DNA of 63,750 nt, counting the filler, from Perkinsus chesapeaki ATCC PRA-425 (Eukaryota; Protista; Perkinsozoa): assembly GCA_013115145.1 (NCBI GenBank). It is 8 parts of 8 records of this genome, joined end to end, with 100 filler letters (N's around TTAATTAATTAA, not from the genome) between each part and the next. Parts side by side here need not be neighbours in the genome. Positions count along the whole stretch, not along the records: positions 1 to 20,672 come from JAAPAO010000614.1; 7 more parts are not named here. One strand, given 5' to 3'. Position 1 is the stretch's first letter; each line of letters starts with the position of its first letter. Shown here piece after piece: positions 1,841-4,188 of the stretch. Position numbers and translations under genes: made by a program. A model generated the notes under the pieces. That model was not told where the DNA came from and searched no databases. It saw nothing but the letters and a program-made list of their open reading frames with translations.

Positions 1841-1923
1841 AGTATCAGTGAGAGGAACACTATGTGTACGTTTTCACCACTATCAATCAGATTGGCTGGG
1901 ACGTACTGTTTATCATCATTCAC
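1841..1923 (-). ncRNA. Box C/D snoRNA, family A copy 1 (double guide: LSU P-loop region and sarcin-ricin-loop-like target)
   Basis: C box ATGATGA (1919-1913), D' CTGA (1890-1887), D CTGA (1848-1845). D' guide CGTCCCAGCCAA; D guide AGTGTTCCTCTC. Confidence 0.85.
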
Positions 1924-1934
1924 TCAACGGTCTA

Positions 1935-2023
1935 AATTGTCTCAGAGAGAGGAACACTTGGTTTCTGCTTTTATCCCCACTGACATTCGGACTGGGGCGG
2001 CAGAATAATCATCATCGACAATT
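1935..2023 (-). ncRNA. Box C/D snoRNA, family B copy 1 (snR67/U31-like P-loop guide plus second guide)
   Basis: C box ATGATGA (2015-2009), D CTGA (1945-1942), 7-bp terminal stem AATTGTC/GACAATT. D' guide TGCCGCCCCAGT + CCGA is antisense to conserved LSU GCUGGGGCGGCA. Confidence 0.9.
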
Positions 2024-2032
2024 AATATACAG

Positions 2033-2243
2033 AGCTGTTGCCGGTATGGTTTTTCTTTCAGATAATCACCACATAGTAGCTACTGAACGACTAGGAATAT
2101 ACCGGCACAGCATTGGGAGCGCCAAGGCACTCAACCAACGCATTCTGTATTGGAGGAAACCGTTGGCGACTATACACCACATGAAGATGCTCGCATAGAC
2201 GGTTACACAGGAGTAGTTAGAGGCTACTCCTGTACTCTTCCGA
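2033..2243 (-). ncRNA. U17: U17/snR30 (SNORA73-type) H/ACA snoRNA, distal copy
   Basis: Diagnostic m1 ATATTCCTA and m2 AAACCAT motifs flank the 3' hairpin (stem TGCCGGTAT/ATACCGGCA). H box ACAGAA; terminal ACA+3 nt. Confidence 0.9.
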
Positions 2244-2252
2244 GAGACAGTA

Positions 2253-2338
2253 ATTGCTCAGTGAGAGGAACACTATTTCTACGATATCGCCACTGACATT
2301 CAGATTGGCTGGGACGTAGTTTATATCATCATCGCAGT
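2253..2338 (-). ncRNA. Box C/D snoRNA, family A copy 2
   Basis: C box 2332-2326, D' 2303-2300, D 2261-2258, short terminal stem TGC/GCA. Same two guide cores as copy 1, with diverged spacers. Confidence 0.85.
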
Positions 2339-2350
2339 GATCAATATTGT

Positions 2351-2436
2351 GCTGTATCAGAGAGAGGAACACTTAGTTTCTGCTTTTATCCCCACTGACA
2401 ATCGGACTGGGGCGGCAGAATAATCATCATTACAGC
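2351..2436 (-). ncRNA. Box C/D snoRNA, family B copy 2
   Basis: C box 2430-2424, D 2360-2357, 6-bp terminal stem GCTGTA/TACAGC (sequence differs from copy 1 but still pairs). Guide cores identical to B copy 1. Confidence 0.9.
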
Positions 2437-2923: not shown

Positions 2924-4188
2924 TTAATCGAAGAGATCGAAGTCCATCTCCTCCTCTTCTTCCTCCTCCTCGGCAGGGGCGGCGGCCTCAGCCTTGGCCT
3001 CACTGGCAGCAGGAGCGGCACCGGCAGCAGGGGCGGCGGAAGCGAACTTAGAGGGATCCTTGAGGAATTCCTGAGAAAACAAAAAATAACAAAAAATTGA
3101 GAAGACAAAAGCGTTCTAAATACGAGAACGATAGTTGTTGCCGGTATGGTTTTTCTTTCAGATAATCACCACATAGTAGCTACTGAACGACTAGGAATAT
3201 ACCGGCACAGCATTGGGAGCGCTAAGGCACTCAACCAACGCATTCTGTATTGGAGGAAACCGTTGGCGACTATACACCACATGAAGATGCTCGCATAGAC
3301 GGTTACTGCGAGCATGGTTAGAGGCCACACCGCAATCCCTCCTAGACTATAAACCACCGAAGAAAAGAGCTCCCGTATTACCTTAAGCTCCTCGATCTCG
3401 GGGAAAGTGAAGTCGATATCGGCGCACAAGGCAGCGATGTTCTTGAAGGCATCGTTGATGGCATAAGGCAAGGTGGCCTCGTTGGGGATACCGATCTCAC
3501 GAGAGAAGGCAGCCAAGTTGCGGACACCGTTCATGAACTTGGAAACGAGATCATCATCGCTGATGTCCAAGGCAGCGGCGTCGTAGACCTCACCGTTGTC
3601 GTAGATGCTCTGGAGCTCAACACCGTACTCGAAGGGACGGATGTCCAACTTCATGAGAAGGGCCTGCTGGGAGGCAGTGACCTTGTGGCCCTTGGTGACA
3701 AGAGCGACATCCTGGGAGATTTCGATAGAACCCTTGACAATCTTGGTGGCAATGTTCAAAGCCTGGAAGAAGTTGGTCTGGGAGGGATCCAAAGAAGTGG
3801 GACCAGCGGGGATGTCGACATTGCACTGGGCGACCATACCGGCCTTGGCCATAGCGGGGACCTTGTGCTCACCGATGATCTCACGGATCTCATCAATGGG
3901 GGCCATGCAGAAGATGAAACCAATGTTGCCCTTGGTGACGTTCAACAAGTGACCGAGATCAGCATCGTTCTCCTCCTCGTACTGTCTAAGGGCAGTGCGA
4001 AGCATAGTGTTCTTGCCCATAACAATAACGGCCTTGCCACGGAGAGCAATACGGATGTTCTGGAGCTGCTTGGATCCAACGTGGTCAACGGTGGCGATGA
4101 GGATCTTATCGCACTTGGCGACGAGGTCCTTCACTCTGTCGAGGTAGGCGTTCTTCTTAGCAAGCTTCTTGGGATCGCGAGGTGCCAT
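2924..4188 (-). CDS. RPLP0: 60S acidic ribosomal protein P0 (uL10); exons 4188-3382 and 3070-2924
   Basis: uL10 motifs (GSKQLQNIR, MGKNTM, GPTSLDP..T.FFQAL.I.TKI.KG.IEI). Phase-0 GT-AG intron 3381-3071; exon 2 encodes the Ala-rich hinge and acidic tail EEEEEEEEMDFDLFD. Confidence 0.97.
3133..3343 (-). ncRNA. U17: Intronic U17/snR30 H/ACA snoRNA in the RPLP0 intron
   Basis: Same m1/m2, H and ACA boxes. About 170 nt are identical to the 2033-2243 copy apart from one loop base. Occupies most of the 311-nt intron. Confidence 0.92.

Follow-up and report, generated by a model that had tools for sequence, protein, structure and literature searches.

Tandem box C/D snoRNA genes beside the ribosomal protein P0 gene of Perkinsus chesapeaki share a conserved guide predicted to target the sarcin-ricin loop

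The window analysed here is a stretch of 63,750 nucleotides, filler included, joined from eight parts of the Perkinsus chesapeaki ATCC PRA-425 genome (GCA_013115145.1). Its first part (positions 1 to 20,672, from JAAPAO010000614.1) contains the gene for ribosomal protein P0 (uL10) and, just downstream of it, a compact cluster of small nucleolar RNA (snoRNA) genes, all on the minus strand. The P0 gene (2924-4188) is made up of exon 1 (4188-3382), a single intron (3381-3071) and exon 2 (3070-2924). The two exons comprise 269 and 48 codons, 317 amino acids together, matching the length of the P. chesapeaki P0 record, and exon 1, the part that was searched, is 100% identical to P0 of P. chesapeaki and 89-90% identical to P0 of P. 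marinus and P. olseni. A U17-like H/ACA RNA with a SNORA73 match lies inside the intron (3343-3133). About 270 nt beyond the P0 stop codon starts a tandem array (1845-2654) in which a unit of a U17-like H/ACA gene, a B gene and an A gene is present twice: H/ACA copy 2 (2446-2654), B2 (2357-2430) and A2 (2258-2332), followed by H/ACA copy 1 (2033-2242), B1 (1942-2015) and A1 (1845-1919). The first-pass annotation had placed four C/D RNAs at 1845-2372. All four are canonical box C/D genes and the start stands, but they are two paralogous pairs (A1 with A2, B1 with B2) rather than four unrelated RNAs, they are encoded on the minus strand, and the fourth extends to 2430, so that an end at 2372 truncates it.

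The H/ACA genes are related to U17/snR30. The U17-like copies score 37-58.8 bits with the SNORA73 model (RF00045), below its gathering score of 74, with E values down to 4e-12 across the full model; array copy 1 reaches 37.3 bits (E 4e-06) and array copy 2 58.8 bits (E 4e-12). The motifs ATATTCCTA and AAACCAT are kept in every copy in three Perkinsus species, and many compensatory changes are found in these genes among the same species. The P0 loci of P. marinus and P. olseni have the same arrangement, with a U17-like RNA in the intron and then units of H/ACA, B and A, two in P. marinus and three in P. olseni. The C/D snoRNAs are most likely processed from a transcript running through the array downstream of P0. 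None of the sequencing runs that contain the locus is recorded as RNA, and two small runs presumed to be RNA gave no match there. Contigs from a second set of DNA runs under the same species label (X2) represent a variant haplotype or strain at 2165-2563 and 3559-4128, in which the second H/ACA gene has numerous single-base differences and those in the P0 exon follow a three-base rhythm; among the 40 differences listed, of 67, none falls inside any 12-mer guide. A full-text literature search found no papers on Perkinsus snoRNAs, and as far as the literature searched goes, no snoRNA genes had been described before for Perkinsus, which parasitises bivalves (oysters and clams) and is of commercial importance.

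All four C/D genes in the window carry the C box ATGATGA 74-75 nt upstream of the CTGA of the D box. In A1, the C box (1919-1913) is followed by a D' box, CTGA, then by the D guide (1861-1850), one unpaired base (1849) and the D box (1848-1845). A2 has its D guide at 2274-2263 and its D box at 2261-2258, and the B genes have D guides of 13 nt, at 1959-1947 in B1 (D box 1945-1942) and 2374-2362 in B2 (D box 2360-2357). C and D boxes are present in all copies of the three species, the C box of P. olseni family A being GTGATGA. For the D' box, family A has CTGA and family B has CCGA. Three sequences are candidates for the C' box, TGGCGA, TGGTGA and TGGGGA; they are degenerate and lie partly within an internal hairpin. 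The terminal stem of family B has 6 bp in every copy. That of B1 (ATTGTC/GACAAT) differs at all positions from that of B2 and the other copies (GCTGTA/TACAGC) with pairing kept, although a fixed-column count scores it as broken, solely through a one-position shift of register. In family A the terminal stem is short (3-5 bp; 5 pairs in A1), 65% of its cells being paired and changes occurring in both strands, while an internal stem shows one compensatory change from G-C to C-G and the two internal helices have 10 of 10 cells paired in every sequence.

The element common to both families is the D guide. The 12-mer AGTGTTCCTCTC has exactly four copies in the window, all on the minus strand (1850-1861, 1947-1958, 2263-2274 and 2362-2373), a count that was matched in 0 of 100 shuffles. 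Each copy is followed by one variable base (A in both A genes, T in both B genes) and then by the D box CTGA, and the arrangement AGTGTTCCTCTC-N-CTGA in all four genes bears out the earlier description of a 12-nt element one nucleotide before the D box with variable flanks. Across P. chesapeaki, P. marinus and P. olseni, the 12-mer is unchanged in nine of nine distinct C/D copies of the two paralogues. Among these nine, either A or T stands between the 12-mer and the D box, the base on the 5' side of the 12-mer is T in family A and A in family B consistently across species, and the spacers and stem flanks have diverged.

The complement of this guide is found in the large subunit (LSU) rRNA of the organism itself. 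The core of the sarcin-ricin loop (SRL) occurs at two places in the assembly, one in a 3' LSU piece on contig C3219 that scores 304-327 bits with the eukaryotic LSU model, the other in a short fragment at the end of contig C2948. Both read GAGAGGAACACTT, in the context ...AGTACGAGAGGAACACTT... or ...GAAGTTAGTACGAGAGGAACACTT..., and the 3' strand expected from the guide complement, GGAACACU, had been anticipated in the first-pass annotation from the conserved eukaryotic sequence. The guide forms 12 Watson-Crick pairs with the SRL in family A and 13 in family B, where an additional A on the 5' side supplies the thirteenth. The base next to the D box (A or T) stays unpaired opposite the C before GAGA, the duplex begins with the base after it, at position 2, and position 5 is an A-U pair in which the U of the guide faces the last A of GAGA. 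Counted on the organism's own SRL, the fifth-base rule leads to that A, as had been proposed, which corresponds to E. coli A2662 in standard SRL numbering and to yeast A3029. The D guides thereby show what we used as the mark of a guide, namely a run of 10 or more contiguous pairs that ends beside a D or D' box and has Watson-Crick pairing at position 5.

Because the sequence rules of C/D-guided methylation are followed in this way, 2'-O-methylation of the tetraloop A is the best reading of the shared D guide. In unfolded pre-rRNA the guide would pair with the SRL across its GAGA tetraloop and its 3' strand. The final A of GAGA would then face the fifth guide base counted from the D box, and fibrillarin would methylate the 2'-OH of this A. 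Since the guide covers both the loop and the 3' strand, the methyl group would be installed on pre-rRNA before helix 95 (H95) folds. While gene anatomy, complementarity, register and conservation are read directly from the genomes, we infer from them expression, snoRNP assembly and methylation.

The D' guides point to a second region of the LSU rRNA, each having a single anchored LSU target of 11-12 pairs. In family B the D' guide CCGCCCCAGT, which directly precedes the D' box, forms 11 pairs with GCTGGGGCGGCA of the LSU rRNA on contig C2713. Its target sequence is GGCTGGGGCGGCA, and position 5 lies opposite the second G of GGGG. This target is presumably the P-loop, at the equivalent of E. 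coli Gm2251 and yeast Gm2619, where methylation is guided by U31 in human and snR67 in yeast. The family A D' guide forms 12 pairs, one of them G-U, with the same LSU stretch shifted by four. Family B would therefore address the G that is conserved at the U31/snR67 site and family A a G four bases upstream, a predicted second methylated G. The family A D' guide derives by this shift from the U31-type guide found in family B, and the two would exemplify a shift of target after snoRNA duplication. Because the D' guides, too, have anchored LSU targets, each RNA looks able to work as a guide through both of its halves.

The relationship of family B to SNORD31 is confined to one half of the RNA. 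With the SNORD31 model (RF00089) B2 scores 26.2 bits and B1 23.6 bits, below the gathering score of 40, and only the part with the C box and the D' guide aligns. Like U31 and snR67, family B keeps CCGCCCCAGT before the D' box and aims it at the P-loop G; the Perkinsus genes differ in their sub-gathering scores, in the CCGA of the family B D' box and in having a paralogue, family A, with a D' guide shifted by four bases. We know of no human U31 or yeast snR67 whose D guide is aimed at the SRL, unlike that of Perkinsus family B.

Most of the rDNA is missing from the assembly, in which patterns made from conserved LSU and SSU probes had no match. It is represented only by scattered fragments, on C3219 (L014 4365-4994), C2948 (215150-215312), C2713, C3059 (1-335) and C2253. 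On C3219, the SRL-bearing contig, the LSU piece is preceded by about 10 kb of AT-richer non-rRNA sequence, whose last letters are ...CTCTATG, and the LSU is taken up again at ATAACTGGC; C2713, which holds the preceding part of the LSU, ends 13 nt before this point of resumption. Such a break points to an insertion in the peptidyl-transferase region or to the edge of an array there. The terminus of C2948 is an isolated SRL-containing fragment of about 70 nt.

Because the assembly is without most of the rDNA, the scan for rival targets covered no more than about 2 kb of rRNA, and the D guide might in truth serve another RNA (a missing part of the rRNA, an snRNA, the spliced-leader RNA, a tRNA or an mRNA), with the SRL match being secondary. 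The gap in the rDNA leaves room for such a target, as do five further exact matches in the genome: a whole-genome search with the 12-mer complement found 11 places, comprising the four snoRNAs, the two SRL pieces and these five. However, five is the number expected by chance in a genome of 41.7 Mb; none of the five lies in an Rfam family, none offers the 13th pair of family B and none has the CTGA context. Within the 2 kb of rRNA that was available, the SRL is the only anchored match of the D guide, with a duplex energy of -22 to -23 kcal/mol versus -16 kcal/mol or weaker on the other pieces. When the guides were shuffled, only 2-5 of 10000 gave an anchored Watson-Crick run of at least 12 on the same rRNA, or about 0.7% when G-U pairs are allowed, and another perfect 12-mer would turn up in the missing rRNA with a probability of roughly 1 in several thousand. 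Thus the search for a better target, which the first-pass annotation had called for, yielded none in the whole genome or in the rRNA at hand, and we hold a different principal target to be improbable. More improbable still is that the identity of the guides merely reflects recent duplication and gene conversion rather than selection, the element being an inert relic in one or both families. The array does appear to evolve in concert, since copies within P. marinus and within P. olseni are identical or nearly so. Yet in all three species the sequence flanking the 12-mer on either side sets families A and B apart consistently, which argues against simple homogenisation by conversion tracts, and the 12-mer has stayed constant though the spacers have diverged and the P0 proteins are 89-90% identical.

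More weight belongs to a reading in which the snoRNAs pair with the SRL without methylating it and act as assembly chaperones or tethers in early pre-60S particles, although we consider this, too, rather unlikely. With the D' guide on the P-loop stretch of domain V and the D guide on the SRL in domain VI, an RNA of this kind could hold the SRL strand open or bring the two domains together. That each RNA has two guides for LSU sites about 400 nt apart, and that there are 4-6 gene copies per genome, would fit such a role, and two known systems provide models for it. In Tetrahymena, the box C/D snoRNA TtnuCD32 has complementarity of 15/16 nt at the base of the SRL stem, no methylation was found at the predicted site, its knock-down affected 5.8S processing, and its authors proposed a chaperone role. 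It resembles the Perkinsus RNAs in being a box C/D snoRNA with long complementarity adjoining the sarcin-ricin stem-loop. Its pairing, however, is at the stem base and takes in box D itself, whereas the Perkinsus guides lie over the loop in the canonical, catalytic register, with pairing from position 2 upstream of an intact CUGA, a Watson-Crick pair at position 5 and 12-13 bp in all, which argues against pairing alone. The yeast protein Rbp95, along with the snR37 snoRNP and the Npa1 complex, binds H95 at an early stage. This, too, is a snoRNP-linked contact with H95 in pre-60S particles that tethers domains V and VI; there a protein contacts H95 and the H/ACA RNA snR37 pairs with H90, whereas in Perkinsus a C/D RNA would itself pair with H95. 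A chaperone role and methylation are compatible and not mutually exclusive. Against the methylation reading stand the degenerate C' boxes, the CCGA of the family B D' box, the short terminal stems of family A and the Tetrahymena precedent. Taken together, we regard it as probable that these are canonical C/D snoRNAs whose D' guides address the P-loop and whose D guide directs 2'-O-methylation of the last A of the GAGA tetraloop.

According to reviews of the plant, yeast and human modification maps, the SRL loop of plants is not ribose-methylated, domain VI of yeast is unmodified, and human H95 is more modified than that of yeast or plants; the ribose methylation named for human H95 is 28S G4618, which is not described as being in the loop. 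A full-text literature search found no report of ribose methylation in the SRL tetraloop for any organism, and the literature searched agrees with the earlier statement that no guided 2'-O-methylation is known at the tetraloop A in yeast or human. By 28S numbering, we place G4618 in the lower H95 stem, more than 10 bases from the tetraloop. It is like the predicted Perkinsus site in being a box C/D-guided ribose methylation on LSU helix 95, but in Perkinsus the guide is directed at the GAGA tetraloop itself, at a distance of two bases from the site of ricin action. When the guide sequence was used as a text string in the literature, only unrelated papers were returned.

Comparable guides were also sought beyond Perkinsus. 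In 185,579 prokaryotic genomes, a pattern of C box, SRL guide and D box in a compact, archaeal-style arrangement had 35 matches, which is the chance level for this pattern, one that a C' variant or another spacing would escape. An archaeal precedent was rejected, as 34 of the 35 matches are bacterial and the sole archaeal match reads as part of a protein-coding frame. In metagenomes, the pattern of a C box followed by TGTTCCTCTC-N-CTGA was found in 97 stretches, among which only two (L037 and L070) and, more weakly, L045, L065 and L071 are snoRNA-like; most of the 97 look unrelated, many being GC-rich or repeated, and match by construction. L037 and L070 each contain two diverged tandem C/D genes (2554-2619 and 3874-3942 in L037, 2376-2444 and 3699-3764 in L070) that share ATGTTCCTCTCTCTGA and adjoin a SNORD52-like gene. 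Their D guide reads ATGTTCCTCTC-T-CTGA and their shared D' guide ends in CCAAT-CTGA. The eukaryote of origin has a DPAGT1 with about 60% identity to those of invertebrates and Balamuthia, and its guide may be an independent SRL-directed guide.

The SRL is among the most conserved pieces of RNA known and is attacked by toxins of the ricin and sarcin types. Translational GTPases dock there and are activated, the phosphate of the tetraloop A positioning the catalytic histidine of GTPases of the EF-Tu/EF-G type; alpha-sarcin cuts between this A and the G before it, and ricin acts at a site two bases from the A. With regard to self-protection from such toxins, a search for the RIP domain (PF00161) had no match in the genome, and control genomes were equally blank. 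It is a doubtful extension of the methylation reading, in our view, that the 2'-O-methyl group at the final A of GAGA would be specific to this lineage and would measurably alter GTPase activation or sensitivity to ribotoxins, and that, with the guides of L037 and L070 from at least one unrelated eukaryote, it would be an instance of recurrent ribosome specialisation.

What is new here is a set of apparently canonical C/D snoRNAs with an unprecedented predicted target beside the GTPase-activating site of the ribosome. The canonical register and the conservation in three species make this a concrete and cheaply testable prediction. If it is true, Perkinsus would provide a natural system for the effect of a 2'-O-methyl group at A2662 on factor kinetics and toxin action, and the heart of GTPase activation would tolerate, or in the Perkinsus lineage even need, a bulky ribose modification.
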